A stretch of 64,000 bases of DNA, from NCBI GenBank assembly GCA_053919585.1, contig CM132795.1; one strand, written 5' to 3'. This DNA comes from Euprymna scolopes. Lineage: Eukaryota. Position 1 is the stretch's first letter. Every line of letters starts with the position of its first letter. Below the pieces are notes generated by a model. That model was not told the DNA's origin and made no database searches. It worked only from the letters and a program-made list of their open reading frames with translations. A program made the position numbers and the translations under genes. Of this stretch, positions 15,592 to 58,939 are shown in pieces.

Positions 15592-15630
15592 TTGATTGGT
15601 CCAATTCTTTCTTTGTCAGTTATAAATAAA
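15592..15630 (+). promoter_or_regulatory. Putative core promoter of family copy 1 (ATTGG at 15595, TATAAA at 15621)
   Basis: TTGATTGGTCCAATTCTTTCTTTGTCAGTTATAAA; motif and spacing recur upstream of the paralogues; ATG lies 84 nt after the TATA start. Confidence 0.6.
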
Positions 15631-15704
15631 ACTTTTTTTTTTAAAAATCTAAAAGAAAAAGAAATGTATAAATACAATACAACGACACAATTGCCGATGT
15701 CATC

Positions 15705-15944
15705 ATGGAAGTTGGTACAACTAATCCCATCAACGCGGACAATTCTCAAGGCCCAACCGGAGCCGTTCCTACTGTGGATATCTTTTTCTTGTCGAAAATC
15801 TTCAACTAAATCCTTCTAGTTCTTTTTATCATTGTTGTGATTCTTTTTATGCGGTTCTGCTTTTGGTTCTGTAAGAAATGTATCAGTCGCACAGTCATTT
15901 ACTCCACTATTAAAACCTCGGAGTGTACCTTAGTTTTGAACTAA
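15705..15944 (+). pseudogene. Small single-pass membrane protein family, copy 1, with an in-frame TAA at 15807-15809
   Basis: Manual translation MEVGTTNPINADNSQGPTGAVPTVDIFFLSKIFN*ILLVLFIIVVILFMRFCFWFCKKCISRTVIYSTIKTSECTLVLN*; the TM followed by RFC matches the paralogues; absent from the ORF track. Confidence 0.65.
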
Positions 15945-16229
15945 TTTGTCAACCGGACGATTCACCTTAATTCAAATATTTTTAGTCTTTAAACTGAATT
16001 GCGTATAATATTCCACTGCATGATTTTTTTTCTTAAAGTTATTTCTTGGTCTAAATTTAAATATTCTTGGCCTAATTTATTTTGAACACGTTCGGCAAAA
16101 TATCTGAAGTCTTATACAAGCGCCTACATAAAAAAAAAACTTACATGCTGTAAAATAAAAATAAGCCCCACTCCAATCTCCCTCATCTTAATGATGTACT
16201 TCCATTTCTTGGAATAAAGATTTTTTACC

Positions 16230-16776
16230 AAGAATTCTATAGTTTTGGTTTCGATTATAGCTGATTGCACTAAAGTAATTTAATTTTGTTATAAATAATT
16301 GTACTAATACTACTTCGGTTTCGATTATAGCTGATGACGCTGCAATAACTTATTTTTATAGAAAATTTTATCAATAAGTTCTCAAGTTCTGGTTTCGCTT
16401 CCAATTATAGCTAAAAGAACTAAAGCTATATATTTGAAATTATGTTTCGATTCCAACTGATAAACCCAAATTATATAGATATATTTGCGAATTTTGAAAT
16501 CGCAACTTTATAATATATAAATTCGATAGAACATTAACAGTATAACATGCACGAATTAAAATATATTTATGCATATTTTACGACATGGCTACGCCAGGGG
16601 TCCCTACTAGCTTAGATAACTACTTTTGCAGTTGTAACAAAATAGCTACAATAACATCAGAGCGTCTCCTTTTACGTTGAACATCTACAGAATGCCAACA
16701 TTTAATATATTACGTATAAATTAGTCCCCCGTGGGATTTCCACAAGACCCGCTAGTGAAACTATATTACTATATTG
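16230..16776 (+). mobile_element. Non-autonomous Helitron-like repeat (family H3)
   Basis: Internal GTTTCGATTATAGCTGAT subrepeats; ends GTGGGATTTCCAC hairpin ...GCTAG^T; homologous to 17379-17790 and 46889-47440. Confidence 0.65.
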
Positions 16777-17378
16777 TGTTTTTAGTTGAATCTCTGCTCC
16801 TATATCTTTGCACGATTTGATAATCTACAGAAGATTAAACTGAAGTGAGTACGCACAGACTGCATGAAAGTCGACAGTAGAATAATTTTTGAAAAAGTAA
16901 AACGAATTTTGGGATAATTATAGCCTATAAACCTAACATAAAGGAATTACGCACTTTTGGGCCACACGTTAAATCCGGCTGATAACTGCCTAACAATGTT
17001 AGACCCTGAATGGAAAGATTTTCCTAACAATTTCCAATTGAAAAAAAAAACTGCAGAAAACAGGTTTTTATAAACCAAAATGATTTATATTGAGGCATAT
17101 TCGATGGTAAGCTTCCGGTGTGTATTTCCTGACAAAATATTTAAATATGCTTGATGATACCAGTGCCCCAAACGCTAAAAAGCAAATGCACAATTTAAAT
17201 GACATAAAATACCTAAATACTAATCAGGATACTTTTAAGCTTTAAATTTCTTTTTTAAATTTAAAGTAAACTCTTTAAAATACATAAAATTATCCAGCAT
17301 ATTAGAACAAATCTGGCAATTTGAATTCGTATTAAATAGTCCTTTAATTGTGGATAGTCTGTTTAACCTCAAATAGAC

Positions 17379-17683
17379 CTAGCGGGGCCTGTTGAATTTC
17401 ACAGCGGACTCTTTCATATGTAATGGATTCATGTTTGCATTCTGTTGATAGTCTGCATAAATGGGAACGCCATTTTATTTTGTAGCATTTTTGTTAAAAC
17501 TGCGAAAGTGTCTAAGTTAACAGAGACACCTGACGCAGCCCAGTCGTAAAATACGCTTAAACACATTATATTTTGATTTATGCAGATCCCGTATATATTA
17601 TCGGCAATTATCTATCAATTCACTTTAAAAAATTGTGATCGCAATATGACTTTGGTGCATTATTGTAACTGAAACCAACTGAA

Positions 17684-17730
<47 letters not shown>

Positions 17731-17790
17731 TTCCCTCAACCATAATGGAAACTGAAACCAAAACTTTAAAGAATTATTGGTATAACTATT
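17379..17790 (-). mobile_element. Helitron-like repeat family H3, inverted copy containing (TA)n
   Basis: CTAGCGGGGCCTGTTGAATTTCACAG... is the reverse complement of the end of the 16230-16776 copy. Confidence 0.65.
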
Positions 17791-17904
17791 GAGAGGAAAT
17801 AAATGACTTGAGTGCCATCAGATATAACCCAAACAGAAACTGATGAAGAATTTTGGTAACATTATTTATTATAAGAAATAGATAATATTCTATGATATAA
17901 ATCT

Positions 17905-18740
17905 TATCTATCTGTTTAAATATATCTATATATGTATGTTTGTATATCTGCCGATAACTTAAGACAGAGGAAACCAATGTTTACATGATTGAATTCTTTT
18001 TGGACCGCGACCCTCCGGACGACAAATATCGAAAAATTGACAAAAAGAATTCAATCCTTCGCCCTCAACTTGGCCCTTGTCTATTGGGAGGGTTCGCTTT
18101 TTTTCGCCTATATTTTTGAAAGTCATCCCCTCTTTTCGATTGACTAGCCTTAATTTAAACATTCGTCACTTCCGGTTTGACGACGGGCGCACCGGCAAAG
18201 ATGTCACTTTTTTTCACGATCTGTTCTTCCTTCACAGTACGAGTTCGAGACTGCCAGCCTACTACCACTTTTGTCCCCCAAAACACACCTCAAATACTCG
18301 GGCAATGTCGGGCACACAGGCTATTCTATAATATAAATCTCATCTCTCTGTTTAAATGAATGTGTGTATGTTTGTGTGTCTTTTCAAAACTTTCGACAGA
18401 GGCGACGGATTTTCATGAGATTGGTGTCATTTTGAAGATCGACATCTCGAAAGACAAATGTCGGAAAATTGGCCCAGAACATTAATTCTCTCAACTGGGC
18501 ACTTTCTACAAGGAGGGGTCGATTTTTGAGAGCCATTTTAGCAAGGCATCGTATCGGTTGGATTGACTTTGTCTAATTTTAATGTTTCGAACTTCCGGTC
18601 CCATCGTGTAGTAGCGACAGGCGATTTTCTTTCTTTTTCTTTTCAGCCTTCTCGCCACGGGTTCTAACCATTCTACCTTCTACCAGCTTGCTTAACACAC
18701 CTCCAAACACCCGGACAACGTCAGACACCCAGGCTTATTG
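17905..18740 (+). mobile_element. Two tandem diverged copies of Helitron-like repeat family H2 (~17905-18325 and ~18326-18740)
   Basis: Both contain GTATGTTTG...GACAGAGG...ACAAAT.TCG.AAAATTG and end with a CGG(G/A)CAA(T/C)GTC-type hairpin; homologous to 30742-31155. Confidence 0.65.
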
Positions 18741-19404
18741 AATATAAATATGATACACATACAAGATGTTATATTAAATATAAATGGCAATCTTACAAGA
18801 AAGGATTATCCATTGTTGGATCCGGTAAATTAGAAAGATAAATTAGTAATAAGATACTTAAAATATAAATATAGAATTACATAAGAAACACAGAAAAAAT
18901 ATGTGTTCAGTGTTTATTTCGTTTCTTAAATGCGTGTAGTTTAGATTAGACGAATGTCATTATATGATTACTTTCGTTTGGCACTGTGCGACGCATAACT
19001 AATGTTTTAACAACAAAAAAAAATCTATAAATTGATATTATATTCACAGTTGAGTTCTTAAATTAGACGATTATTTTGGCAGTATTAAGTGTAACAATGC
19101 GCGATTTAATATTTCAAAGAGATATTTTCCACGAAGAACTTGGTATATAGTCATTTTTGTTGAATATAAAACAGCGCAATTAAATATTACAAGAATTATA
19201 ATCTTGGGATATTTATTAACATTTTGTAGTTTGTAAAATAATGCATTTGACATTTTGATGCTGTAATTTAGTAAGAGTTCTTCTTTTTCGGGGCTTATTA
19301 GTTTCTTATACCCGGGTTAGCAAATTTAAATTTTCTTATATCCGGATTGTTGCACTGTACATTAACACTGTTTCTATTTTGGGACCAGAAAAATGTCTCA
19401 TATA

Positions 19405-19670
19405 ATCACAGCATAACCACATTTCACACACCGGTTTCCGTCAGATCACTGAAGTTAAGCAAAGATGAGTCTGGCCAGTATCAGATGGGTGACAATTTGG
19501 GACTTCCAGCTGCTGTGTGTGCTCTTCGCATTTTTTCCAGTGGTACTGGACTTTTCCTTGCCAGTGGATTCAAACAGTGCCGATTCAGGAGAGGTATTGT
19601 TGGAGATTGCGTCACCCTTGCCTCATGATTACACACGCAGCTGCCCCTACAGGGGGATATCCTTTGTTTT
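19405..19670 (+). mobile_element. 5S rRNA-derived SINE (SINE3-type), head plus body
   Basis: 19405-19520 is collinear with eukaryotic 5S rRNA (GATCACTGAAGTTAAGCA box A-like, GATGGGTGAC box C-like, GCTGTG end); the downstream body is shared with 23285-23520. Confidence 0.8.
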
Positions 19671-19955: not shown

Positions 19956-20092
19956 NNNNNNNNNNNNNNNNNNNNNNNNNNNNNNNNNNNNNNNNNNNNN
20001 NNNNNNNNNNNNNNNNNNNNNNNNNNNNNNNNNNNNNNNNNNNNNNNNNNNNNNNNNNNNNNNNNNNNNNNNNNNNNNNNNNNNNNNNNNNN
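19956..20092. other. Assembly gap (N run)
   Basis: Run of Ns. Confidence 1.
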
Positions 20093-20700: not shown

Positions 20701-21325
20701 TAAACAGCTATCATCGACAATGATCCCCTAGAACCATAAAGACAACGTTTTTATCCATTGCGCCATGTGCCACGAAGATTGATCAAGGTTTTTATTGTAT
20801 AATTTATGAATCTAATTATGTTTTTATCTGGTCTTCCATTGTCGGGTCCCTACTGAATGCTATCGAAAAAAAAACAACAACTATGAGAACGGGATAACAG
20901 TTCGTAAAAGGATGAATACACTGTATCCTTAATCAAACAATTTAACCAAATCACAATGTCTTATCTAAGAGGCCAGCTATTTTCTAATAAGCAAAAATCG
21001 ATGTTTGTATTCGATTCAATGAGTTCAAGTGTGCATTCAATAAATATCATCAGGTCTTTGGGTTTTTTTCGATTGCAATTGAGCCAAGATTAAAGTGAAC
21101 CATAAAAAATGCTTAAATAAGCCGTGCATTTTACTATTACCATTTAAATCTTAATTAGTAGTTATTTATAAATGAATCTTCAAATAAATTACTACATTGT
21201 AGACCCCGCACATGAGTCCGCATGAGTTGTTATATGTTCTGGGATCGAACCATGTATCTTTGTATTACAACCGTGTAAAGATAAATGGTGACCAAAGAGT
21301 GTAACACTTTTATAAGAAGAATTAT

Positions 21326-21365
21326 TTGATTGGTCAAACAACTATTCTTTTTCTGTTATAAAAAG
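21326..21365 (+). promoter_or_regulatory. Putative core promoter of family copy 2 (ATTGG at 21329, TATAAA at 21357)
   Basis: TTGATTGGTCAAACAACTATTCTTTTTCTGTTATAAAAAG; ATG lies 78 nt after the TATA start. Confidence 0.6.
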
Positions 21366-21434
21366 AATGGATCCGGTAAATCTGTTCATCATTGACTACG
21401 ACTTTGAAAGAAAATATTCCTAGAGGATCTTAGT

Positions 21435-21695
21435 ATGGAAGGAACGCAAGATAACACTACCTTGCAGAGTAACGATAGTTTCACGGATCTGCCTACAACT
21501 ACGTTATCACCGTTCTCTGACGAATACCAATTTGATTTCAAACTTCTGTTCGCTTTTGTTTTTGGTGTAGTTTGTTTCTTTGGCGTGGCATTCCTAGTGC
21601 GTTACTGCATTTCCTTCAGTAAGAAACCTATCGGGATGTCTAGGGTCGTGACTGACCCAGAACTGTGCACTGACAAGATTTTGGATAATGTATAG
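21435..21695 (+). CDS. Small single-pass membrane protein, 86 aa (family copy 2)
   Basis: ATG with A at -3 and G at +4; sequons NTT and NDS; S/T/P-rich acidic N-terminus; TM LLFAFVFGVVCFFGVAFLV followed by RYC..KK; 13/29 ungapped identities with copy 4. Confidence 0.75.
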   Translation: MEGTQDNTTLQSNDSFTDLPTTTLSPFSDEYQFDFKLLFAFVFGVVCFFGVAFLVRYCISFSKKPIGMSRVVTDPELCTDKILDNV

Positions 21696-23284
21696 CGCCA
21701 CCTTCATCTGATGAGCACATTACGACAGTCGGGAACACTTGCCTGGCTGAGAAGATAAATCTTCCAAAAGATGATGCAAAATATTTGGATACATATTTAA
21801 CTGAGCAGACCTACAAATCACAAACTCTCGTTTATAAAAGCTTATAATATTACGAATATTTTATTGAACCAGTAATTTTACTGCACACAATTGGCGAAGT
21901 TTTATTTTAATAGAAAATTGCATCGCCATAATCGTTCCTTAGTTCTATCTTTCAAATGAATGTTGATATTGAGCTTGAAACAAGAACAAGAAATATGTAC
22001 CAATACTTCTGAGCTACCAGTCTTTAAATAATTTGCATTTGCTGCGTTACATGTGTAATGCAATGCCAGAGCATGACCTATACATATACAATCCATTACA
22101 ATATAAGTTTTTCTTGTAAAATGTATTGCATTTTAATATTTACAGTATCTTGTATTGTATTCAAAGACCTGTTTACATCGTGTTATATTTAACGTTCTAA
22201 ACGATTAACTTTCCGAACTTTACATTCAATTATTTTAACTCTGGATTCTGTACAAAATTTTACATCGTCTTTTTAAATCTGGGTAGATATATTTTGTTCG
22301 GTCCGTTTATAAACCTGTATAGAAAACAATCTCAAAGCCCCGCGTTGGTATAACCAAATGAACCCATCAGAAGGAAAAATGTCGATCTTTAATTTTAAAC
22401 TAATACTCTTATATTTATAACTGAACCTTCCAAAATGCAGTAAATCTGTAATTTAATCGGTTTTTATTGTAATTACAAAGATATTCTTTTTCAAAAACCC
22501 CTTTCTGATTCACTAAATTCTGCTTCTCAGCAAGCTTGAACCATGAAAAACTTCATTTTCTTTATGTTCGTATAAAAAAAAACGTGAATTTAAGGAACTT
22601 TTTTCTGTTTTTAATGCACGAGACTGCCTTGTGATAAATATCTCCTTCCCGTTTACTATTTAACACTGTCAGTTTATTAGATTTCCATGTAGTTTAATTC
22701 ACATCCGTAATTTTACTTTCTAACTATAAATCCGCTTATGCAAGTGCGACGCCACTAATATGCATGGCTAATTAAAACCATTTTTATTTTGTCAATTGTA
22801 AATTATAGTACGCAGCTTTTTCATGTGGAAAAGTATGTCTGCATAAAACGTTATTACGAAATGTTTACACTAATCTGTTAGCAATACTTGTTTCAACTTT
22901 TTTAAATTCTGATTAACTCTAAACGCGTACCCTAATTTTAGGTTATTGCTGTTGCTACAATAGAGCATGTATACGATTCTAGTTATTAACTAGATGCTAA
23001 GCTAAAATAGCTTTTATCTGAAGAAAAAATATTGTAATAGTCTCTTACAAATTATCTAAATTCCTGACTAATTATTTTTTTAACTGATGTAAAAAAATCT
23101 GTCCCTATCCATCTGACATTTTTATTTTACTCTATAACTCGAATAACTACATTTACAAGTTTTGCATTTGATCCATAAATCCCGGTATCACTATTATCCA
23201 CCTTTAATTTTAATGTTTCATAAACTTTACTAAAGTTCGGTCAATCAAGATTTTAACTCTGAAATCATACGTTAGTGTTCTTCC

Positions 23285-23520
23285 CCCCCCCCGGATGTTG
23301 AGCAAAAATGTCACTGCTACTGTAATTATTCGTAAGTATTGCGCAATCTCCGACCACATTTCTCCTGAGTCGGCATTTTGTGGAAATTCAGGAAGATTAT
23401 ATGCATGGTGCAGTAAGCGGAGGGCACATACAGCGTCTGTTATGATCAAATAGTCGGCTATCTAATCCTAGCCAGAATCGTCGGTGATGTGACAAGAACT
23501 GGTGTGCAGACGTTAATATG
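23285..23520 (-). mobile_element. 5S-derived SINE, diverged copy
   Basis: Reverse complement contains CACACCAGTTCTTGTCACATCACCGA...GCTGTATGTGCCCTCCGC...TGCCGACTCAGGAGAAATGTGGTCGGAGATTGCG, matching 19405-19670. Confidence 0.7.
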
Positions 23521-23723
23521 CTATAATTAAGGATTGCTCAATATTAACGATCCTTGTATTTTTTAGATTTTCTTCTAAGTGATTAGTCGTCAAAACAAGA
23601 AGTGTATCTGAACATGGGACGTCTTCAAGATGAGAGCCGTTCATATCAATATAGACCAGATGTACGTCAGAGCATTGATGATGGAAAATAGATTTTTTTC
23701 TTTTACACACACGCATCACTAAA

Positions 23724-25460
23724 TTATCAAGGCCAATAGGCCACTCAAGGATAAGGGTTAAAGAGTGTACAGTAGAAATTGGACAATATATTACTCATTA
23801 GTAATGGAAATTCGATAAATTGTTTAACTTAGTTGGAACGGCTCATCAAGAACTTGGTTACGTTAGACTTGAAGACAACCATATTGTAGTCAGCAGCAAA
23901 ACGGAAGACAATTCCACAAAACGGAAGACAATTCTAAGAAAATTTGTTCATGGAATCTACGTTTAGGTTTAGCCAGATAAAGAGTTGGTTGATTATTTAT
24001 AGTGTTTTAAGCTAGACAAGTATTTCTTGTGAAAGTTTGGCGAGGAAGGACCATAGACTGAATCTCAGTCGAACACTTTCCATGAAAATAACGATACATT
24101 AAGAGACAAACTCGCAACATCTCTTCTGTGAGATAGAGGTTGCAGAGAAGAGAAAAGGACATCTCCTACGATGCTACGAAGTCTATTTTTAACTATATAA
24201 AGGCAGGGCAAGTCCTTTCTAGCAGCTCCTGCCAAGATGTGGCAACAGTATTCCATCCTTGGACGTACCTGGCTCTTATATAGATAGAGAATTGCATGAG
24301 CAGTGAGATATCTACTTGATCGATAGAAAGATCCCACCATTTTTCCACGTGTTCAATTTAAGATCAGGAGTAGTGGTCAAGCCTAGAAGTCACTTATCTA
24401 AAAAAAAACACTTCCGTCTCCAAAATGCAAACTGTAGAGAATAATTTAAGTTTTAATAACAGCGTTCAAAAGACTTTTTTAAATTAACAGTTAAAAGAAA
24501 AGCGTGATTTTATTCTGGACTTTAGCTAGTCACGTTTTAAGAAACTTGCGATATAGAAGAAAAGCGGATAGGGGGGGGTCTTCCGAAACTTAGTTGGTGA
24601 CGTTATAAGTAATTGCGAGATAAAATGGAAGCAGGATTAAGGGGTGGGGACTGAAATAATAATATAATGGATTGAGTCTATGCAATATTTAAGATCAACT
24701 TGGTAGATATATAAACATTTATGGACGAGAAAAGCTAGCATTTAATAAAACAATGCATTAAAATTAATAAGACGCCCTTTTCCCCCATTGCACCACGCAT
24801 TCAAGATAACAGGACAGAGAATCAAAGATCTTGTCTGTTTCGTGTCTTAGAAATGTTGCCATAGATGTTAGTGCCGTCTGGATAAATATCTACGAATGAT
24901 CTAAGGATGTGATTTAGATCATTGGTGCAGATCAAGTAGAGTTGAACCCAGAATGGAACTGTGAGGGACGCCGCAATTAATACTGTCAGCTTCTGATTTC
25001 TGCCCATCAACAACTGCTCTTATGAATCTATCAAAGAGGAATGATTTAATAATTAAGCACTTTTCAGCTATTGTGTAGCAAACCTTTATGTCATTCCTTA
25101 TCGAAGGCATTTGCTATGTCAAGAGCACTTGCCCTAGAAACGAAGCCTACGTCGAAAGATTCACTTATCTTGTGAGTAATGCTGTTAGAACTTCATCTGT
25201 AGATCTAGACGAGCAGAATGTTTGCTTTTTACGATTAGTTTGTTTTTACTGTGTCCGACAGTCAACCCATCTGAGTCACTTGTCTTTTTTCCCGAACACC
25301 TAACGAGTAGTTAGGTTTGTAGATATCTCAGATACCTCGTAATTGGGCTAAAAGATATTGCACCTTTGTTTTAATTTGGTCAGGCCAAGAGTACTATTGG
25401 CGAGACTCTTATTTAGTATCGGAAAATGGGAATCATTGTAATCGCCAAGAATGAGATTTT
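23724..25460 (-). mobile_element. CR1-like LINE (family A), internally deleted copy with unrelated sequence at ~24390-24780
   Basis: On the minus strand: LILGDYN (APE-like, ~25440), ALDIANAFDKE*HKGLL (~25080-25130), GVPHSSILGS, LYKSQVRPRMEYCCHI, then the 3' UTR at 23724. Confidence 0.85.
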
Positions 25461-26149: not shown

Positions 26150-27320
26150 TCATTGCTTAAAGGGTTCTTTTTTATATCTTGGGAATTAAATCATTTCTTT
26201 CCGATAGGTTCATAAGAGTAGTGGTTAATGGATAGAAATCAGAAGCCCACAGTATTAATTCTGGAGTCCCCCAGGGGTCCATCCTGGGACCAACTCTCTT
26301 CCTGGTTTACATCAATGATCTCCCAAAACACATACTTAAGTCATTCGTTGACATCTATGCTGATGACACGACCATTTATGGCAACACATTATAGGCCGTA
26401 AATGACAAAGTGGTTTCTAATTCTCTCTCCTCTGAATCTTGAGCGCGTGGTACAATGGGGAGAAAGGTGGCTGGTCATTTTAATGCATCCAAAACCAAGC
26501 TTCTATCTTTATATCATCAACGCTCTGATCCCTATCTGGCATCAATTGAAATGGATGGCTCTCGTCTTGGGGAGGCTCCATGTTTTGACAAGCTTCTGGG
26601 ATTGACCTTTACTCCTGATCTGAAATAGAACACGTACATCAAATCTGTTGCCAGGGACGCTGGAAAGATGGTGGGATCCTTCTACCGCTCCAGAAGATAT
26701 CTCACTGCTGAGTCAATTCTCTATCTGTATAAAAGCCAAGTACGTCCGAGGATGGAATACTGCTGCCACGTCTGGGCAGGAGCTGCTAAAAACAGCCTAT
26801 CCTGCCTTGACAGAATACAAAATAGACTTCGTGGTTTAGTGGGGGATGCCCTTTTCTCTTCTCTGCAGCCTCTCTCCCACAGAAGAGACGTTGCGAGCCT
26901 GTCTTTTTTTATCATTATTTCCATGGCAAGTGCTCGTCTGAGCTCCCAACTCTGGTCTCCCCTCGCCAATCTTCCACGAGAAATACTCGTCTGGCTGAAA
27001 CTACTGTCAATAATTTTCCCCACTCTTTATCTGTGCCTAAATCCAAACGTAGATTCCATGAGCAGAGCTTCTTTCTCAGAAGTGCACGATTGTGGAACTC
27101 TCTTCCGTTTTCCTGTTTCCCACCTGACTACAACTTGGATGTCTTCAAGTCCAACATAAACAAATTCCTGACAAACCGCCCTCTTAAGTAAGACACTCTA
27201 TCAAATCTCCAATACTAATGATTACTATAATACTATCTCATTGATTACTGTACACGCAATAACCCTTATCCCTGAGTTGTCTCCGGGCCTTGATAAGTTG
27301 TGACCCCCATGTAAAAAAAC
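26150..27320 (+). mobile_element. CR1-like LINE (family A), 5'-truncated; C-terminal half of RT, 3' UTR and A-rich tail
   Basis: GVPQGSILGPTLFLVYINDLP, DIYADDTTIY, LYKSQVRPRMEYCCHVWAGA; stops and frameshifts present; best-preserved copy in the window. Confidence 0.92.
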
Positions 27321-31620: not shown

Positions 31621-32819
31621 TTGTATCTAATATATAGTCCTGATTTCAATTAAAAAATGTGATTTGAGTGTCATCTGCTAGAATCGAAACCAACACCAAA
31701 AAATTAGAAAACGTCGTTTCATAATCAAAACTATATTTACAAGTTGAGCAAAGACATGAGTTTATTTATACTCAATAAATTTGACTGTGGAAAGGTGTTT
31801 GAATATTATCAAAGATGTTTTATATCATACTGTGTCGAACATATTGTCATGATTTCAAACGTAAAAATAACATGATTTGCCTGGCAGCAACGAGACTCAA
31901 GACCGAGACTCAAGACCGAGACTAAAACATAGCAACACATAGTTTTATGAAAGAAACTATGTTTACAAGTTAAGCCAACACTGAAATTTATTGGACTTAC
32001 TATCATTTGATTGTGTAAGCGAGTGTGAATTTTATTAAACAAAGCCCAGCTTCTTTGGCAACACTATTTTTGATAGACGTTAATCAAGACGTGACCTTCA
32101 AAATGTATCATTTAGGCGCGTGAGCTGAAAAAAGACGTCATCGCTGAGGTTCTAATAAGCAAGACCTGTCTAATAGTCAGGCTTTTCATAATAAATCTAA
32201 ATATTTTCCAAAAAGTATTAGAAAAATTGCATAAAAAGCCGTTAGAATTAATGAAATATTTCGTTGTTTTATGAATTTTAAAATGTAAAAAAACGTTCAT
32301 TATTTTCTCATAAATTGAATTCAAAAAGATGAAAAAAAAGGAAGACGATTCGATTTACAGCCGAACTAACTTTTATTCAATATATAAAAAGTATGCATGC
32401 AATACTACGTATGTTTGAAGCAGAAGGCAATCAAATATTGCAAAACATGAAATATTAATTTAGGCAATAAACAAGTATTAAATAATCAATTTAAAATTGA
32501 ACGATAAATATGTGCTTAAATTCAAACGAACAACAATAAATATCTTTAGAAAAATCAAAACGAACAACACTATTTTAAAATCAAAAGGAACAATAATATT
32601 TAAAAAAAAAACAATCAAAACGAATGACATATTTGTAATTAAAACCAACAATTACTAAATTATGAAGCGAAAACGAACGAAGAGGTAGGTTATCTGAAAA
32701 ACAGACGATAAGTTAACAAAGATAAAAATAAATTAAATTCAAACATATGTTAATATGAACAAAAACAGTTACTAGTGCAGAAATATGTCAAACATTAAAA
32801 AACATTACAAAAATTGGGT

Positions 32820-39075: not shown

Positions 39076-39933
39076 NNNNNNNNNNNNNNNNNNNNNNNNN
39101 NNNNNNNNNNNNNNNNNNNNNNNNNNNNNNNNNNNNNNNNNNNNNNNNNNNNNNNNNNNNNNNNNNNNNNNNNNNNNNNNNNNNNNNNNNNNNNNNNNNN
39201 NNNNNNNNNNNNNNNNNNNNNNNNNNNNNNNNNNNNNNNNNNNNNNNNNNNNNNNNNNNNNNNNNNNNNNNNNNNNNNNNNNNNNNNNNNNNNNNNNNNN
39301 NNNNNNNNNNNNNNNNNNNNNNNNNNNNNNNNNNNNNNNNNNNNNNNNGATATANNNNNNNNNNNNNNNNNNNNNNNNNNNNNNNNNNNNNNNNNNNNNN
39401 NNNNNNNNNNNNNNNNNNNNNNNNNNNNNNNNNNNNNNNNNNNNNNNNNNNNNNNNNNNNNNNNNNNNNNNNNNNNNNNNNNNNNNNNNNNNNNNNNNNN
39501 NNNNNNNNNNNNNNNNNNNNNNNNNNNNNNNNNNNNNNNNNNNNNNNNNNNNNNNNNNNNNNNNNNNNNNNNNNNNNNNNNNNNNNNNNNNNNNNNNNNN
39601 NNNNNNNNNNNNNNNNNNNNNNNNNNNNNNNNNNNNNNNNNNNNNNNNNNNNNNNNNNNNNNNNNNNNNNNNNNNNNNNNNNNNNNNNNNNNNNNNNNNN
39701 NNNNNNNNNNNNNNNNNNNNNNNNNNNNNNNNNNNNNNNNNNNNNNNNNNNNNNNNNNNNNNNNNNNNNNNNNNNNNNNNNNNNNNNNNNNNNNNNNNNN
39801 NNNNNNNNNNNNNNNNNNNNNNNNNNNNNNNNNNNNNNNNNNNNNNNNNNNNNNNNNNNNNNNNNNNNNNNNNNNNNNNNNNNNNNNNNNNNNNNNNNNN
39901 NNNNNNNNNNNNNNNNNNNNNNNNNNNNNNNNN
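39076..39933. other. Assembly gap with a 6-bp island (GATATA, 39349-39354)
   Basis: Run of Ns. Confidence 1.
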
Positions 39934-41491
39934 GAAGTGATTTCCGAAATTGATATGCCCGATCACAAGTATTACGAATCAATAGTGATAATGTTTTAAG
40001 AAGTTGAGCTTAATCTACTAGCGAGCATATTATTTAAGTATTGTTAATAATGAGTGTGATATGTCCTGTGCCTCTTCACTACTGCTAAGCGTCTAAATAC
40101 ATACGAATTATGATTCTTTATGCAGAATTCAAGTTGGCAAACTATATCAGCAACTGAAATAGGGGAAATCATGTTTGTTTTGTAAGTTAGAAAAAGTAAA
40201 AAATATTAGATAATGCAATTTATTTATAACTATAACATCAACTATTTTTGTCACATTATCATCATTTCATATCGTATTAATCCAGATATTTCATTGTTGC
40301 CATTATTTCACCGATAATTGTTTTGTTCTGGTAGGATTCTTGCAAGAAAGCGTTTGGATAATAAAGGCAAGGACCACATGAAGATCACAACAATTCTAAG
40401 TGAAAGTGATTTTTGTGGATAGAAGTGGATTGGAAATTTGGAGACCCAGGGCGTCAGTTCGTGTCGTTAACTACTGAATCACACATTGTATCTAATTTTC
40501 CGTACAGAGAGTAATCTTCATATGAATTTATCAATTATATAAGGTATAACTAAACATGAAACCATGCTAGTATAATTTAAAATATGGCATTTTTTTTAAC
40601 TATACGAGACAAAAATGTAACACGTTAGGTTACCCATCGAACTCAGAATAATAGGCAGAAGGAATGAGTCTAAGTTCAGTTAAACTTTAAAAATATACAA
40701 AGTTAGTATTGTCTTACTATATGCTAAGTTCATTCCTTCTCTCATTCATACAGTCTTACTATCTATCTATCCTATCTGTCTGTTCTCCCTCTTAATTGCA
40801 GGGTAAATAATATAAAAGCAAGAAGTAAAATGGAATCTTATACACTCGGCTGCTAGCAAATACACACCACATCCAAGTGGGCGTACACACTTTTTTGTTC
40901 TGTCTTTATATAAAGTATAACATGAGAAATTCAAGAACATATTATTGTCAACCATGATTGGCCATATTATGTTGGTGAATAAATAATTAATAATCACAAA
41001 CATATTTAGAGTCTTTAACATTATAAGATATTCTTTTTATTTGAATCCGTAGCAAACTGATTTATTAGCAAATAGTATTGTCATTTCTTTCAAATACAAA
41101 TTCTTATCGTACTTCTGATTATAATGCTGCATTTTAATCGAAAAAATATATAGACAATAATGGAAGTGAGAGTGATAGACGCCGTATTAAATACGAGCAG
41201 AATACAAAGGGCACACAGTGAGAAATTAAAAGTCTTAGACAGAAACATAATTAGAGATGTGTCACACGTTGTGTCAATTATTTTGAACAATTTAAATTAA
41301 ATTTGTGATAGTTTATTATCTTTTAGCATGTGGTTTGTATGCTAAAATATATAAAGAAAACGTATTTGAGAAAGATATTCGATGAAAATAGTCCAGGGTA
41401 AATGTATTAAAAGTGTAGAGTTTGAACGCGGTATCTTTTACTCACAAATGTGCTATGTTAACCAAATATTTTGGGTGTTATTAAAATATTT

Positions 41492-41527
41492 CCATTGGTT
41501 TTAACCGTTATCCCTCGAGTATAAAAC
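41492..41527 (+). promoter_or_regulatory. Putative core promoter of family copy 3 (ATTGG at 41494, TATAAA at 41520)
   Basis: 26-nt ATTGG-to-TATA spacing as in copy 1; ATG lies 81 nt after the TATA start. Confidence 0.55.
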
Positions 41528-41600
41528 AAATAACGAAATTGAAATATGTAGGTGTCTTCTTTTGAGTCTTGAGATTGTAAGTCACGGTGGCAATTACACG

Positions 41601-41858
41601 ATGGGTGAACTAAATAACGTGACCACGAACATTACTAAGACGTTAGTGAGGATTTTGAACTACACAAGAGTTTCCTGGCTTACCTCAGTTACACTAATGT
41701 TGAACCACAACCCGATAATTCATTATGTCTTCTTTGGCTTACCTATTTTTATAGTCCTAATAGCTTGTCTGTGGTGTTGTTATTCGTTCTGCCGAAAAAA
41801 TGCAAACATCCCAGAACCTGTTCCTCTTACAGAGAATTTTTGTAATTTTAGAAAATGA
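41601..41858 (+). CDS. Small single-pass membrane protein, 85 aa (family copy 3, most divergent)
   Basis: First ATG at 41601 (the track start at 41562 is TTG); sequons NVT, NIT, NYT; TM YVFFGLPIFIVLIACLW followed by CCYSFCRK; GL-x10-WCC fits the family register. Confidence 0.65.
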   Translation: MGELNNVTTNITKTLVRILNYTRVSWLTSVTLMLNHNPIIHYVFFGLPIFIVLIACLWCCYSFCRKNANIPEPVPLTENFCNFRK

Positions 41859-44267
41859 TGTTTGTAAAATCAATACCTGGCAATTTCATTCGATTCGATG
41901 CTTTCGGCACTTATTGAAGTATCCTGCTTTGATTTTTTTTAATATTTATATGCATTAGTAATATAAAAGGATTAACTTTTTTTTCTGAACTCTTTGCTAC
42001 ATTAGTTAGCAATCTCTCTGCTCTAACCTCTTATGCCTCCTACAAAGCCTTAATGTAACTGATACATTTTGTGCGAAGTGTGTCCTCTTTCCATATGTCT
42101 TAATGAATTGTATAAAATATCGTTATGATTCATCTGAAGATTTTTTTAATTAGTTTTAAATCTCCCTTGTTTATAGTTTTAATTTTAGGATTGACAATGC
42201 TGTTTACCTTTGCTATACAGAACGTTGTTCAACCTCGTATAGCTAATCCAGATTGCATATTATGAAGTGGTTTGACTTTCGAAATCCAAACTACTTGCGA
42301 GTTTTATGTTTTACTGTAACGGAAACGTTTATTGATTCGGTATCTATTCGGATTAATGTACCACAAGATGTTCGTTTCTTTGCAACTTCGAAATCCACTC
42401 TTTTTTTTCTTTAGATCTACTTATCCCAGCATTTCATCTTTCCAGTAACATTTTCTTCGTGACTATGTAACCTGTACGAAGCTGAAAATACAAGAAATAA
42501 TCCAGTTTGGAACACTTCGTTGTGATCTGTACCAAACAGCTAATTTTATAATACATTAAATTCAGATGTTGACGTGCTTTATCTAATGAATGACTGTTTG
42601 CAGAGTCTCTAATCTAATTAGAGGAGAATGTTATATTTGTAATGCATAGTACAACAACTGAAGTAAATGCCTGTGCAACAGTTCTTTCTTTCTGAACTTT
42701 TTATTAAGACTTTGACGTAATTCATTCAGGAACGCGTTTAAAAATTCTTGCACATTAGTATTAATATTTACGTTAGTAATTTCGTCCCTGATCAAAATCA
42801 GTTCCTAATCTTATCTGTACACGAACTATGTATACACATCGAAACCTGCAAGATATACTAAATATTTTATACTCTAATTTTATTAAAGTTTTAAAATTAT
42901 TAATTTTTCATCATACGCATTTTATACCATTCGGTTTAAGGTTCTTAGCGAGGGTAGTCTTAGAGCCGTACCATTTTAGTACTGCTTCGATAAAAAGCGT
43001 TTACGCTGTAAGAATTTTAGGCATCTGTTTATTTACTATGTAAATTGTTAACTTCCATATTTCTGAAATAGAAAATACTATTTCAATGAATATACAGTGC
43101 CACTCTGTAGGATATCTAAACTAATTACAAAAGTTGCTTTAATTTTGACCTTCATTTTAAGATCAATCTCGGATTCGTCATGCGTTTCGAAACAGCAGCC
43201 TTGTTTTTTTTATCTTGAAATTGTGTTCATATAAAAATTACAGACGCTCTTTTCGCTACCACTCATATTCGCTAAACATTAGATCTTGTGTAACACAAAA
43301 TTGAAGAGAATCATAAATAATATTCGAATATAAATGATTGATAGCTTAGAAGAGAAAGCTGAGCCTTTTTTCTATAAATGCCTGGGTAAATTAGTTGCAT
43401 GCTTGAGATGTCGAAAATAGCAGGGCTCATGTCTGCCATGTAATTTTCCTCTAGCCATATAAATTTAAAACCGAATCTTGTCTCCCTCTTTTGCCATTAT
43501 TTTAGTCTCAATTTTGTGAGCGCTTGATAGAAAGTGGCTACATGTCTTGTCCAGAGTCACTGTCATACAAACAGCTTAAATATTTTAAATCTTTGTTTTA
43601 ACAAAAATAAAAATCAGTTACCAATCAAACACAGGGTAATTCTGAACTTTTACCAACATTTGGTATAAGTGTTGGAGTCACTGTTCCCGTTAGTCTGATT
43701 TGCAATTGTTAAGACACGCTTATCAGTTTTTGTAGTAACCTGATGCAACGTAGTAGCTCTGTAGATCGATCCCCGTATTTGCTCGAAAGTCTGAACATGG
43801 AAAACTTTTTTAGTTTTTTTTTTAGTAAAACTCAATTTACTACTTTCGATTAACAATAATCCTAGTGGTTGTAATGATATAAATGCAATTTACTGAGCGC
43901 TCTTCAATGGAGTACATACTATGGTCGTCAACAGAATGGAAGATTCTGTGAAATTCTTATTTACAGACTGTAAATGTTGCTTGTGCCTTGCAGGTATTAT
44001 TTTGGTCTCACGACTGTAGTCTAAGTAACAGGAATGGTTTTACTTTTTATAAACTACTAAATCAACATGAACACCATATATATATATATAAGCCTGAGGA
44101 ATCCAACAGTGGATGAAACGCGGAATATTCAGTGTAGCTTAATCGCCATATTTTATGAATTACTAACTAGCTCTACCTACGTATTGAGCACTTTTGAAAT
44201 AAATACTTAAAGTTAACCCATAAATCTATACTTTCGTATATTAATTTTATGTGAGTAAATGAATTAG

Positions 44268-47101: not shown

Positions 47102-47135
<34 letters not shown>

Positions 47136-47440: not shown

Positions 47441-47859
47441 AATTAACTCACAGTCATTCGGATGTAAACGTGGTATACAATATAAATAATACAGACGCTA
47501 GCATATTACTATGTATATTCTAAGTGTTGCCTTCTTGTTTTGATTAGTTAAGTAATTGCATGAGGTATCCACACCGAGACTGCTTAGGAAAATGTCGTTA
47601 GCTCAGAGCGCACAAACTTTTACTCCCCACGTTCTGAACTTATGTCACAGTTGTCAGCAGTGAAAGCATAGTAAAGATAAATATTCGATAGAAAGTATCT
47701 TTAGATGGAAATGAAACAGATGACGATGCAATAAGTAGTCCGAAACCCCCAAACAATAACAACTTCCATATTGCCATTTATTGGTGCTACATGTAATGGG
47801 TTTACTTAAACAAATATAAATCTAATTTATAAAACTCACAATCAGTATGTCTCAATATT

Positions 47860-50459: not shown

Positions 50460-50717
50460 TTACAGATGACTGTCTTCAACTAAATGGATACTTCGCTGTA
50501 GAGCCACAGTTGTTGTCTTGTATTCCCAAAAGCAATAATAACAGAACCGAATAAGAAAAGCCATAGCTAACAACAGCATTACTCCACCAAGGATATAGAA
50601 TCCTAGTTCAAAGTCAAAATGAAATTCATTAGAGGGCAAATGAGACGTCGTTATAGTCAGCTTGGCAGTTGCAGCGATCAATTTCATCGTTTCATTATTA
50701 CTTTCTCCTCTCATCAT
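50460..50717 (-). CDS. Small single-pass membrane protein, 85 aa (family copy 4; alternative in-frame ATG at 50747)
   Basis: MMRGESNNETMKLIAATAKLTITTSHLPSNEFHFDFELGFYILGGVMLLLAMAFLIRFCYYCFWEYKTTTVALQRSIHLVEDSHL; sequon NET; EFHFDF and GV-x10-RFC are shared with copy 2. Confidence 0.72.
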   Translation of the reverse strand: MMRGESNNETMKLIAATAKLTITTSHLPSNEFHFDFELGFYILGGVMLLLAMAFLIRFCYYCFWEYKTTTVALQRSIHLVEDSHL

Positions 50718-51064: not shown

Positions 51065-51209
51065 NNNNNNNNNNNNNNNNNNNNNNNNNNNNNNNNNNNN
51101 NNNNNNNNNNNNNNNNNNNNNNNNNNNNNNNNNNNNNNNNNNNNNNNNNNNNNNNNNNNNNNNNNNNNNNNNNNNNNNNNNNNNNNNNNNNNNNNNNNNN
51201 NNNNNNNNN
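51065..51209. other. Assembly gap
   Basis: Run of Ns. Confidence 1.
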
Positions 51210-54460: not shown

Positions 54461-54609
54461 GCCGTCTCCGAGAGTAATCACTCATATCCGATGTATGTTC
54501 TTTACTTGTAAGATTTAAATGTTGTATTCGACATAAGAATCTGAATTTTTCGGGTGAGATTCATATGTCTAAATCGACAGGAGAGTCTATCACCCCCCAC
54601 ACACGCACG

Positions 54610-54654
<45 letters not shown>

Positions 54655-56479: not shown

Positions 56480-56900
56480 ATCAGATCGTAATGAGAATGC
56501 GGAAACCCCGACATCCATCTCTATACATGAAAGCCACACTACCAGTCTAGCTACACTTAAGATTGCTAAGAAAACCATTGATTCCTCCCTTGATCAATGT
56601 TGTAGACAACTGACTCCAAATCCAGATACCTCACTCGCTCGGGATGATGTGAGCCGTTATCCTACTGACATACGTCCAGAATTCACGCAGTTTGAAACTT
56701 TTGAGGAAAGCGTGTTCTACTGTTTCTATTTTTTCATTCAGACAACAGGAGCAAAAGGGTCGATACCAATCCCGAAGCGCATTTCATTGGTGCATCGAGC
56801 ACTGCAAACCAATCGCTATGTCAAAGACTATTCAGAATTATTGGGAAAACTCCGGCCTGGGAACTGAGAATGCACCCCCCGACAGCTGTAGTTGATTCGC
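56480..56900 (+). mobile_element. Possible decayed Gypsy-like pol remnant
   Basis: LKIAKKTID and SRYP resemble the Gypsy RT N-terminus; weak similarity only. Confidence 0.25.
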
Positions 56901-57303
56901 TAGTGCGCCCGAAGCAGTCTCCACCACTAAATTTCAATATAGTTCCTTTTTAGACTGGGCGAAACCTCGGCAACGATTAAAGCGCAGCGCGGCATTCATT
57001 AAAGAACTGCGTTTGGCCTATTTGGCTTACAATGGCCATCGGTCAAATGGTCAGAGATGAAGTTAGGAAAAGCGGCCCCGACCTTAAGAGCCTATTCAGA
57101 CTCCTGTGTCTGAGTGCTACTTAGGAATGCTAATTACTCAACATGTGTGTGGCTTTTCAGGTTTCGCATTTCCAAGTCTCTATCAATCATATGTTGAGCG
57201 CGACCTGTCTACCAACAGACGGTCTCCTTTCGTTTAATTTCATGACTAATAGCAATTTTATTGTCACAATAAGAACATATGATATTCAATTGTAAGAAAA
57301 ATT

Positions 57304-57352
<49 letters not shown>

Positions 57353-57559
57353 AAAGATGACGTCATTTTATTTCCGTTTCATGAAACCATCTACTAGTTG
57401 ACCAGTTGCATACAAATCTAAAGAGCGATGTCTGAAAGTGACACAATGTTTAACGAGCGGATTCGGAGATGAACTGCTGTTAAACGTAAGCTCTCTACCG
57501 ATCAAAGTTATGGCAACAGCACCAGTACCCTCAAAATGCATAGCTGAATTGCCACGAAT

Positions 57560-58105
57560 AAACACGACATGCTCAAGCTTATGATCTTTGCTGTGATTTC
57601 AAGTAAGAATCACATCATGCCACCTCACATCTTCGAAGTCGGCTTGAAAGTCAACATCGAAATGTACCTGGATGAGCTGAAGAGTTTGGTGATCCAATGA
57701 TGTAATCACGTGACCGCTGGAAGACCCTGAGTGTGGCATCAAGGCTTACTGTTGGCCCACATGTCTAAAGGGAGCCAGACTTGGCTTCATAAGAAGTGCT
57801 ACGACTTTGAACCTTCACTCACTGCCACCCTCTTTTCCCAACCTGAGCTCGCTGGACTACTTCGTTTGGGAATACGTGGAGAACATCACATACATGAAAT
57901 CCCACAACACCAAAGACAGCCTGGTCGCCGCTATCCGGTGATTCCGTACCTATATTGAGACTGTGATTGAGGCTAAAAGTGGCTACATTGAATATAGCTC
58001 GGCCCCTTAACATAATCAAGGAATCTGAATTCATTTTTCAAGAAAAAATTAAATAAAGCTGTAGTATAGTTTTTAATAGAAAGAACAATTTATCGTTCGA
58101 CCCTG
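57560..58105 (+). mobile_element. Tc1/mariner-superfamily (maT/DD37D-like) remnant, 3' half
   Basis: IMPPHIFEVGLKVNIEMYLDELKSLVI, LDYFVWEYVENIT..SHNTKDSLVAAIR, IEAKSGYIE*; ends in TIR-like GACCCTG. Confidence 0.75.
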
Positions 58106-58170
58106 TTTGTGTGTATATATATGATATTCGAATTCATGTATATATCAAACAGTTAAAGTTAAAAATAGTC

Positions 58171-58367
58171 TCACGATTTTACGGCCAACTATTCTTCTGG
58201 CCTTCGTCAGGTGGCAACCGCGACGGGATAGGGACTCTGAATCTTTCTGATTGCATCCACTGCAAGGCAGTAATTGCAGTGGATGTAATCAGGAGATTCA
58301 GTGTTCTTATCCCGTCGCGGTTACCACCTAACGGAAGCCAGAGGAATAGTTGGCCGAAACGTAGTGA
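58171..58367. repeat. ~197-bp imperfect palindrome (95-bp arms, 8-nt loop) built from Penelope-like terminal motifs
   Basis: Arms pair along their length, for example CGGCCAACTATTCTTCTGGC with GCCAGAGGAATAGTTGGCCG; loop GGCAGTAA at 58266-58273. Confidence 0.9.
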
Positions 58368-58631
58368 AACAACTAAGAAAAAGATGAGGATAATAGTCCG
58401 CAATAAATAAAATTAATAATGAATTCCAATTAAATTATATTTAAAAATAGAGGTTCAATATTTTTTTAATTTAAACTCTAAATGTCTCTGTTATTTGCAA
58501 AGACCTTGATATAACCAACATTATTAAAATATTTAAATTCTTCTTATTTTTTCTCTACGGGGCTTGAACTTGGTATATTAGTATTGCTAACTTTTAAATG
58601 TAAATAGTGACCTACAATTCAAAATAAAACA

Positions 58632-58650
58632 TTTTGTCAGTTATAAAACT
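58632..58650 (+). promoter_or_regulatory. Putative TATA box of family copy 5 (TATAAA at 58642)
   Basis: TTTGTCAGTTATAAA is identical to the 15-mer at copy 1; ATG lies 85 nt after the TATA start; no ATTGG at -26. Confidence 0.55.
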
Positions 58651-58726
58651 CTGTTTGTTTGTTAGTAAGAAGACAAATTTTCAGATTTCAATTCCATCCA
58701 TACGAACTGCAAACCGCTGTTTTAAA

Positions 58727-58939
58727 ATGAAAGGTGGAAACACGACCGACGTTGTTCCTGTAACCGACGAATCCGGAGATATTCCTGTAACAGATTCACC
58801 AATAATCACTGAGAGTAGTACTGCGGAGTATGACTATGCCGTCTTTGTGCTTATTGGTGTGTTTTTCTACCTTATAGCAGTGTATATTTTAAGATACTGT
58901 AATTTGTTGTATCATAAGTATCTGAAACCAAAAAATTAA
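58727..58939 (+). CDS. Small single-pass membrane protein, 70 aa (family copy 5)
   Basis: MKGGNTTDVVPVTDESGDIPVTDSPIITESSTAEYDYAVFVLIGVFFYLIAVYILRYCNLLYHKYLKPKN; sequon NTT, GV-x10-RYC, basic tail; the track start at 58634 is TTG. Confidence 0.75.
   Translation: MKGGNTTDVVPVTDESGDIPVTDSPIITESSTAEYDYAVFVLIGVFFYLIAVYILRYCNLLYHKYLKPKN

Follow-up and report, generated by a model that had tools for sequence, protein, structure and literature searches.

Several groups of small bitopic membrane proteins are described which place the N-terminus outside the cell. FXYD proteins, the regulators of the Na,K-ATPase, include FXYD2 and FXYD7 without a signal peptide; they are about 65-90 aa, N-out and single-pass, with a short Ser/Thr-rich ectodomain that can be glycosylated, a conserved aromatic/acidic motif at the outer membrane face, a TM helix with small residues and a basic, Cys-containing inner juxtamembrane stretch, which is palmitoylated in FXYD1. 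KCNE potassium-channel beta subunits and MRAP are small type III bitopic proteins with an N-glycosylation sequon within the first few residues and a single coding exon, and they act by TM packing against a larger membrane protein. SMAGP, glycophorins, TMEM154 and opalin are small bitopic sialoglycoproteins with a short mucin-like N-out ectodomain, one TM and a short tail. Reovirus FAST proteins are small N-out/C-in proteins with a polybasic, sometimes palmitoylated inner juxtamembrane region. Here we describe five small ORFs (c1 to c5) with a comparable design in a window of 64,000 nucleotides (the whole stretch of DNA analysed) of the mollusc Euprymna scolopes (GCA_053919585.1, contig CM132795.1), which form one end of an array of at least 30 intronless genes. 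The family is undescribed.

Five ORFs in the window and their family in the genome

The first-pass annotation had reported five intronless ORFs of 70-86 codons with one shared architecture, and this observation was confirmed, with all five ORFs at the positions given; only the number was an undercount, because the window holds the distal end of the array. Four ORFs are intact and c1 is broken (Table 1). Each has a hydrophilic N-terminus with no signal peptide, one hydrophobic helix (KD19 of 2.45-2.87) starting at residue 37-39, Cys just after it and a short tail, and the four intact copies carry N-x-T sequons near the N-terminus. About 14/31 identities were read between c2 and c4 across the motif and TM region, where 13/29 had been claimed. 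Blastn found no DNA similarity between the copies apart from short promoter matches. None of the assembly gaps (19956-20092, 39076-39348, 39355-39933, 51065-51209 and 61511-61642) lies inside an ORF or a mapped transcript; the nearest is 348 nt upstream of the ATG of c4. The gaps affect only the spacing of the genes and the distal promoter of c4.

Table 1. Positions of family copies, promoter modules and transcripts in the window, with supporting observations (E-values are against the HMM built from members outside the window; X1 to X9 are RNA libraries)
Feature	Position	Strand	Description	Support
c1 promoter module	15594..15626	+	Inverted CCAAT box (GATTGGTCCAA) followed by GTTATAAA	
c1	15705..15944	+	Family copy with an in-frame TAA at 15807-15809, just before the TM helix; probably a pseudogene	Second half, E=1e-3
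c2 promoter module	21328..21362	+	GATTGGTCAAA, then N22, then TATAAA, at -107 to -73 from the ATG	
c2 transcript	21403..23765	+	Colinear and unspliced; 5'UTR about 32 nt, 3'UTR about 2.07 kb; 3' end abuts a dispersed repeat and is not exactly placed	Contigs of 1780 nt (X1) and 2207 nt (X9); adapter letters before 21403; depth zero over 20935-21375; no joints
c2 CDS	21435..21695	+	86 aa; sequons at N7 and N13, FDF motif, TM at about 35-57, then RYC	E=3e-12; AlphaFold2 helix over residues 35-63 with pLDDT >90
Possible decayed sixth copy	31649..31765	-	Only the SFDYETTF motif plus half a TM remain	E=9e-4; weak
c3 promoter module	41494..41525	+	CATTGGT, then N19, then TATAAA	
c3 transcript	41533..43793	+	Colinear and unspliced, about 2.26 kb	One X5 contig of 2278 nt; X1 starts at 41588 next to adapter letters and X2 at 41566; depth zero over 41300-41496 in X1, X2 and X5
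c3 CDS	41601..41858	+	85 aa; most divergent copy; three sequons (one at N6), WCC after the TM, no FDY motif	E=1.5e-4; four SNPs in RNA contigs, all nonsynonymous
c4 CDS	50460..50717	-	84-85 aa (a second ATG sits 3 nt after the first); sequon N-E-T at N7 or N8, FDF motif, TM, then RFC	E=1.2e-13; found in RNA libraries X5, X2, X1, X4, X7 and X8 at word shares of 0.30-0.61
c5 TATA box	58642..58647	+	Within GTCAGTTATAAAA; the preceding 15 nt are identical to those of c1	
c5 CDS	58727..58939	+	70 aa; sequon N5, EYDY motif, TM, then RYC	E=5e-8

An HMM built from 20 members outside the window, also leaving out the close duplicate of c2, picked out exactly the five ORFs among 1090 stop-to-stop window ORFs. 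Six-frame searches of the whole genome found at least 30 intact members plus about 3 broken ones. Of 33 hits at E<0.01, 32 fell within 1.3 Mb of one chromosome (C13) of the 5.9-Gb genome, and all hits with E<0.005 lie at C13:110.419-111.721 Mb. The core aligned without gaps across 25-30 members.

The ORFs might instead be exons of larger spliced genes, parts of a transposon or chance hydrophobic ORFs, as AT-rich DNA yields many Ile/Leu/Phe-rich ORFs and the window is full of repeats. Of 98 ATG ORFs of 50 aa or more, 13 have a TM-like segment, but the nine others look like low-complexity junk. The mRNA sequence of c2 has only two places in the genome, which does not match with a transposable element of many dispersed copies, and the transcript contigs show no joints. 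So this explanation is already contradicted by the confinement of the protein-level hits to one array, by the independent HMM and by the transcripts.

Transcription, promoters and selection

Contigs from RNA libraries covered c2 and c3 colinearly and unspliced for about 2.3 kb, starting 13-68 nt upstream of the ATG, just downstream of a TATA box. The library type was an automated guess and the contigs carry no strand. Presence in the libraries seems restricted to some samples: the same libraries from three studies contained c2 and c4, libraries from five other studies contained none of the sampled words for c2 or c4, and the one polyA run mapped (X14) had no reads on c2.

An inverted CCAAT box (GATTGGTCAA) lies about 26 nt before a TATA box in 16 of 31 members, and it is the only DNA similarity left between the window copies. 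NATTGGTYMA occurs in these 16 of 31 members against 6 of 1368 control pieces. Two further ATTGGT...TATAAA sites, at 47780 and 63752, are not followed by a family ORF.

The window copies do not form a clade and sit on long branches of 1.2-2.4 changes per site, which supports an old family. About 30 of about 34 loci keep open frames of 70-143 codons in a 33% GC genome, at synonymous divergence above 0.7, whereas simulated substitution-only neutral drift keeps 6.5% at d=0.2 and 2.3% or less at d>=0.3. Over nine independent sister pairs, dN/dS was 0.58 in the TM core (p=0.004), 0.65 in the tail and 0.88 in the ectodomain, the last not different from 1. In c2 against its duplicate, the CDS was 91.8% identical and gap-free and the 5'UTR 32/32 identical, while the flanks were 78-85% identical with indels.

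It could also be that the loci are transcribed but the ORFs are not functional proteins, only young or decaying proto-genes in a duplicating segment whose similarity reflects common descent. Overall dN/dS is high (about 0.6-0.9), several paralogue pairs are at about 1 or above (L033/L038, two array members, at 4.7 on 17 changes), c3 carries only nonsynonymous SNPs, pseudogenes exist (c1 and C13:110825834), and translation is inferred from sequence alone. It means that constraint is weak and some copies may be drifting towards loss. However, the retained frames, the CDS free of indels while the UTRs are rich in them, the core dN/dS, and the charge asymmetry and motif positions conserved across all members make this view very unlikely.

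Predicted topology and inferred function

Summed over 25 members, K+R counts were 26 before and 102 after the TM, and D+E counts 53 and 17, which predicts N-out/C-in topology. AlphaFold2 gave c2 a single confident helix with disordered termini (mean pLDDT 65). The interpretation in the first-pass annotation, an old, selected and fast-evolving paralogue family of type III proteins, was supported, including its statement that no homology to KCNE, glycophorin or FAST proteins is recognisable; its proposals that the proteins are glycosylated and probably palmitoylated, and that gene finders would miss them, remain inferences.

We consider that the five ORFs are genes, one broken, of a tandem family that is lineage-specific on present evidence. 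In this view each gene is an independent intronless Pol II unit with an inverted CCAAT box, about 26 nt, a TATA box, a 5'UTR of about 30-70 nt, 70-143 codons and a 3'UTR of about 2 kb. The product would have a disordered, Ser/Thr/Pro-rich ectodomain of 30-47 aa, which evolves almost neutrally but keeps an N-x-T sequon (in about 15 of 25 members) and a TTxxP site and so would act as a glycan-bearing stalk; an interfacial aromatic motif P-x5-[FV]-[DN]-Y-[EQ]-x-x-[LF]-[YF]; one TM helix with small residues about 6 positions apart; and an aromatic, Cys-containing and basic inner collar [WR]-[YF]-C-Y-x-x-Y-K-K-R, with the Cys in only about 18 of 30 members, followed by a short, often acidic tail. 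Because the membrane-embedded core is the part under purifying selection, we infer that the proteins act through TM-helix packing, most likely as small accessory or regulatory subunits of larger membrane proteins (pump, channel, transporter or receptor), with a design like FXYD, KCNE or MRAP and the many paralogues providing different variants. No partner protein is known, and there is no binding, localisation, Ribo-seq or proteomic evidence.

The family, the array, transcription of c2 and c3, the promoter module, the maintenance of open frames, the predicted helix and the charge asymmetry rest on direct analysis, while topology, translation, glycosylation, palmitoylation and the accessory-subunit role are inferred. 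A real protein-coding family is very likely and N-out topology is likely, but the accessory-subunit mechanism is tentative, and we give the whole statement including the mechanism a probability of roughly 0.45.

Alternatively, proteins of the same topology might work on their own as small mucin-like surface glycoproteins, in glycocalyx, adhesion or anti-adhesion, or pathogen or gamete recognition and decoy, with the ectodomain as the active part and the TM merely an anchor. The ectodomain keeps glycosylation-type sites (an N-x-T at one shared alignment column, and TTxxP) while the rest changes freely, fast evolution and tandem expansion are typical of recognition or decoy families, and the protein-language-model neighbours include SMAGP, glycophorin A and opalin. 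But the ectodomain is very short with only 1-3 sequons, and selection is strongest on the TM and juxtamembrane core, including specific aromatic and small residues which a mere anchor would not need. We regard this as possible but unlikely.

If the ORFs are translated, a 1.3-Mb stretch which looks like repeat-filled empty DNA holds one of the larger microprotein gene families seen in an animal genome, invisible to homology-based annotation. It gives a clean natural experiment on the evolution of a bitopic membrane protein, with the ectodomain free apart from its putative glycosylation sites and the TM core and promoter conserved. It also provides candidates for lineage-specific regulators of membrane transport or excitability in molluscs, and the GATTGGTCAA-TATA module and family HMM are tools for finding further members and orthologues. 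A bolder and unlikely possibility is that a cephalopod- or mollusc-specific array of more than 30 genes encodes FXYD/KCNE-like accessory subunits that arose independently of the vertebrate families, each paralogue tuning the same pump, channel or receptor differently in particular cells. This would be a genome-encoded way of diversifying membrane physiology in this lineage, co-regulated through the shared CCAAT-TATA module.

Comparison with known families

No sequence search found any homologue or known family, and we treat FXYD, KCNE and SMAGP as analogues only. Pfam scans of the window copies and of 25 members gave only weak, TM-driven noise (PgaD, MLANA, TMEM132_C, Hemotin, UL41A and others), with a best E-value of 0.0023 for any family among the 25 members and all far below the curated cut-offs. 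The family profile against the PDB had its best hit, E=0.01, to a 35-aa poxvirus TM peptide, which we take as compositional. Word-indexed searches with c2 and with the 25-member alignment found nothing. An exhaustive HMMER search of 1.84 billion representatives gave two hits, a bacterial autotransporter with Ig repeats and a translated tandem repeat, both rejected as compositional; no member or relative is present in the collections of 1.8 and 5.8 billion protein clusters. Cortexin, considered because of FAFV...VRYC in c2, was not among the Pfam families listed. Literature searches for an invertebrate FXYD or a cephalopod single-pass family found nothing relevant.

By protein-language-model features, the nearest neighbours were small bitopic glycoproteins (SMAGP, TMEM154, glycophorin A, opalin, stannin and TMIE). 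For the SMAGP and glycophorin type, scores were 0.85-0.91, with shared feature counts of 126-146 of 256, below the level that indicates a common family, and without an HMM match, although the SMAGP model may be missing from the Pfam copy scanned. Those are chordate families. FAST proteins are encoded by fusogenic reoviruses and have a myristoyl group or hydrophobic patch in the ectodomain, whereas the genes here are cellular, with their own CCAAT/TATA promoters in a chromosomal array; their N-termini are hydrophilic without a conserved N-myristoylation signal or ectodomain hydrophobic patch, Gly2 is present in only 2 of 30 members, and there is no sequence match.

For KCNE (PF02060) and MRAP, no Pfam family appeared in the listed output; PF02060 was not listed at E<=10 for the window copies nor among the families listed for the 25 members. 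No motifs are shared, and those families have 2-5 dispersed members instead of a 30-gene tandem array.

FXYD was raised by the F-D-Y-E-T motif, and we keep it only as an analogy. PF02038 was not listed at E<=10 for the four intact window copies and the second half of c1, nor among the 25 listed of 46 weakly matched families when 25 members were scanned; its best hit in the whole genome was E=1.35, below the cut-off, with none in the array, and the family profile did not hit the many FXYD chains in the PDB. FXYD proteins have F-x-Y-D before the TM, two conserved TM glycines and a Ser at the cytoplasmic end. The present family has F-[DN]-Y-[EQ] with different spacing, about 5 residues closer to the inner basic residues, small residues at other positions which are not invariant, and a helix ending in [WR]-[YF]-C and not S-R-R. 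What the two have in common is the size, the N-out single pass, predicted for the present family, with a short Ser/Thr-rich ectodomain, the aromatic/acidic motif (here F-[DN]-Y-[EQ]-T) directly at the outer membrane face, the small residues of the TM helix and the basic, Cys-containing inner stretch, while FXYD genes are multi-exon and dispersed and these genes are intronless and lie in one array of at least 30.

The five ORFs and the array they belong to

All five ORFs proposed in the first-pass annotation were found where it had placed them, so its observation is confirmed. Copies 2 to 5 (c2 to c5) are intact and encode products of 70-86 aa, while copy 1 (c1) reads through one in-frame stop codon. 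Each has a hydrophilic start of the form M-x-G...N-x-T, a single hydrophobic segment starting at residue 37-39, and R[YF]C or WCC right after it. No ORF or mapped transcript touches any run of N. The closest gap lies 348 nt upstream of the ATG of c4, and the gaps make only the spacing uncertain. The copies share essentially no DNA similarity, except short collinear matches about 75-110 nt upstream of the ATG.

The window is 33% G+C, and 13 of its 98 ATG ORFs of 50 aa or more look TM-like, so a control was needed. A profile built from the four intact copies was searched against the 5.9-Gb genome, which is spread over at least 46 chromosome-sized scaffolds and contains 53 molluscan haemocyanin units (PF14830), so that it is the genome of a mollusc. 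This search found further members, all on the same chromosome (C13), and two more rounds brought the count to 30 intact ORFs of 70-143 aa that were inspected, leaving aside one further open hit at C13:110419244. There are also at least three broken copies: c1, a copy at C13:110825834 with three stops, and a possible decayed sixth copy in the window between c2 and c3. The last is a short ORF carrying SFDYETTF plus half a TM (E=9e-4 among 1090 ORFs). In the last round, 32 of the 33 hits with E<0.01 lay within 1.3 Mb, or 0.02% of the genome, and the window is the distal end of this array. The family is about six times larger than first described.

An HMM made only from 20 members outside the window, which also left out the close duplicate of c2, recovered c4 (1.2e-13), c2 (3e-12), c5 (5e-8), c3 (1.5e-4) and the second half of c1 (1e-3) among 1090 stop-to-stop window ORFs. 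The grouping is therefore not circular. The mRNA sequence of c2 occurs only twice in the genome, as itself and as a 74-81% identical duplicate 49 kb away, about 27 kb upstream of the window. By this count it is not a transposon, and readings of the ORFs as artefact, exon or transposon are very poorly supported.

The window does contain repeats. The Rfam 5S rRNA hit (50 bits) is the head of a dispersed repeat of about 290 bp, for which the genome search gave more than 11,500 first-look candidates at 82-86% identity; this is a 5S-derived SINE family, not a 5S gene. A second dispersed repeat of about 670 bp had more than 13,500 first-look candidates at 86-90% identity. It is preceded by poly-T in reads, is extremely abundant in RNA libraries (word depth up to 1.6 million), and abuts the 3' end of the c2 transcript. 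A 163-aa ORF looks, judged by eye from its sequence alone, like the C-terminal part of a non-LTR retrotransposon reverse-transcriptase protein.

Coordinates of the family copies and of other features in the window and the array
Feature	Position	Strand	Remarks
c1	15705-15944		in-frame TAA at 15807, just before the hydrophobic helix
5S-derived SINE repeat	19404-19521, extending to about 19700	+
c2 transcript	21403 to about 23765
c2	21435-21695
Dispersed repeat of about 670 bp	23724-24390	+
Retrotransposon-like ORF	26668-27159	+
Possible decayed sixth copy	31649-31765	-
c3 transcript	41533-43793
c3	41601-41858
SNPs in c3 CDS	41727, 41749, 41812, 41842		V43F, F50C, P71Q and C81F
CCAAT-TATA sites without a family ORF	47780-47820 and 63752-63792	+
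c4	50460-50717	-
Assembly gap closest to an ORF	51065-51209
c5	58727-58939
Array	C13:110,419,244 to 111,720,942
143-aa member at locus L037	L037:1501-1929 = C13:111592337-111592765	+
Close duplicate of c2 at locus L031	L031:1444-1872 = C13:111634237-111634665	-

Conserved features of the family

The members start with Met, followed by a Ser/Thr/Pro-rich N-terminal part of 30-47 aa. An N-x-T sequon falls at one shared alignment column in roughly half of the members, and it is followed by a TTxxP stretch; Pro at +3 favours mucin-type O-glycosylation. The first-pass annotation had put the sequon within the first nine residues, which holds for the window copies and a few others, while elsewhere the same sequon column is preceded by about 10 extra residues. 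The motif P-x5-[FV]-[DN]-Y-[EQ]-x-x-[LF]-[YF] lies at the predicted outer membrane face, followed by a TM helix with small residues about six positions apart, and by [WR]-[YF]-C-Y-x-x-Y-K-K-R at the inner face, where the Cys is present in about 18 of 30 members.

The tail is short and often acidic, but two members have tails of about 85 aa. The close duplicate of c2 has a 143-aa product with a long acidic tail, whereas the tail of c2 is cut, to 86 aa, after an indel-rich stretch, so the two copies differ mainly in the cytoplasmic tail. In the 143-aa member at locus L037, the cytoplasmic tail repeats an acidic [DN]-P-L-[DEN]-T-[GD] motif three to four times. Shorter tails elsewhere hold one similar PLTEN or ITLEN stretch, and this may be a short linear binding motif.

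Summed over 25 members, the 15 residues before the TM hold 26 K+R and 53 D+E, and the 15 residues after it hold 102 K+R and 17 D+E. By the positive-inside rule this predicts an N-out/C-in topology. AlphaFold2 on the alignment gave one confident helix (c2 residues 35-63, pLDDT >90) and disordered ends.

Transcription, promoter module and selection

RNA-type libraries from three studies contained 29-69% of the sampled words of the c2 locus, and libraries from the same three studies (including a further run, X25) contained 17-61% of those of the c4 locus, while libraries from five other studies of the same species contained none. Contigs placed on c2 showed depth starting sharply 32 nt before the ATG, with adapter letters in front, and then running colinearly to the 3' end in contigs of 1780 and 2207 nt without joints. 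Depth was zero in the 440 nt upstream. The library type was only an automatic guess, the contigs carry no strand, and 3' ends next to repeats are imprecise. One polyA run had no reads on c2, so expression is restricted to some samples. On c3, a single contig of 2278 nt covered the transcript colinearly, other libraries started at 41566 and 41588, and depth was zero upstream in three of the four libraries. It means that both c2 and c3 are unspliced units of about 2.3 kb, with short 5'UTRs and 3'UTRs of about 2 kb.

Upstream of c1, c2 and c3 lies an inverted CCAAT box ((G/C)ATTGGT), which reads GATTGGTC in c1 and c2 and matches the NF-Y consensus on the other strand. A TATAAA follows 19-22 nt downstream of the ATTGGT core, about 75-85 nt before the ATG, and the observed 5' ends lie 10-60 nt downstream of the TATA box. 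The module can be written as GATTGGTCAA-N(20-26)-TATAAA. Across the family, 16 of 31 members have NATTGGTYMA at -84 to -111 (-146 in one, after a poly-A insertion), compared with only 6 of 1368 control 250-nt pieces from the same loci. The composite CCAAT-TATA pattern is present in 18 of 31 members and in 34 of 1368 controls. Two similar sites in the window, of the form ATTGGT(G/A)(C/T)TACATGTA...ATATAAA, match the pattern but are not followed by a family ORF, and they may be copies of another repeat. This cis-module has outlasted recognisable DNA similarity in the coding regions, which argues for independent, co-regulated transcription units.

c2 and its duplicate are 100% identical over the 32-nt 5'UTR, and codons 1-73 are 91.8% identical with no gaps, while the flanks and 3'UTR are 78-85% identical with many indels. 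Pairwise dN/dS among paralogues ranged from 0.1 to 4.7. Pooled over nine independent sister pairs, dN/dS was 0.88 in the ectodomain (not different from 1), 0.58 in the motif-TM-YKKR core (p=0.004) and 0.65 in the tail (p=0.05). The four single-base differences between RNA contigs and the assembly inside the c3 CDS are all nonsynonymous, which fits weak constraint, although four are too few to test. In a substitution-only neutral simulation with this base composition, only 6.5% of these ORFs stayed open at d=0.2, 2.3% at d=0.3 and 0.6% at d=0.5. In reality about 30 of about 34 loci are open, although subfamilies differ by dS above 0.7 and by 1-2 amino-acid changes per site. The frames are therefore maintained by selection, while most residues outside the core are free to change. 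The alternative that these are transcribed but non-functional ORFs is poorly supported.

Inferred mechanism and comparison with known families

The interpretation in the first-pass annotation, an old, selected and fast-evolving family of small N-out/C-in membrane proteins, is supported. The family, its array, the unspliced transcripts of c2 and c3, the promoter module and the maintained frames come directly from the analysis, whereas translation, membrane topology, glycosylation and other modification, and function are inferred from sequence. What is conserved is the membrane-embedded core, with its aromatic belts and small-residue face, plus the glycosylation-type sites. We therefore tentatively favour small accessory subunits that would pack against a larger membrane protein, with a glycosylated stalk that would aid folding and trafficking (probability about 0.4). 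The main rival, an autonomous mucin-like surface role, is possible but doubtful.

This is a new protein family, while its architecture is of a familiar kind. Nothing reached significance in Pfam, in the PDB by profile search, among 1.84 billion cluster representatives, or among 5.8 billion clusters; the two hits among the representatives are a bacterial autotransporter and a translated repeat. The F-D-Y-E-T motif, the missing signal peptide and the basic, Cys-containing collar recall FXYD2 and FXYD7. However, PF02038 matched no member scanned and nothing in the array, and the motif spacing differs, so FXYD is an analogue and not the family. The nearest neighbours by protein-language-model features are SMAGP, TMEM154, glycophorin A, opalin, stannin and TMIE, at scores that indicate a shared class only.
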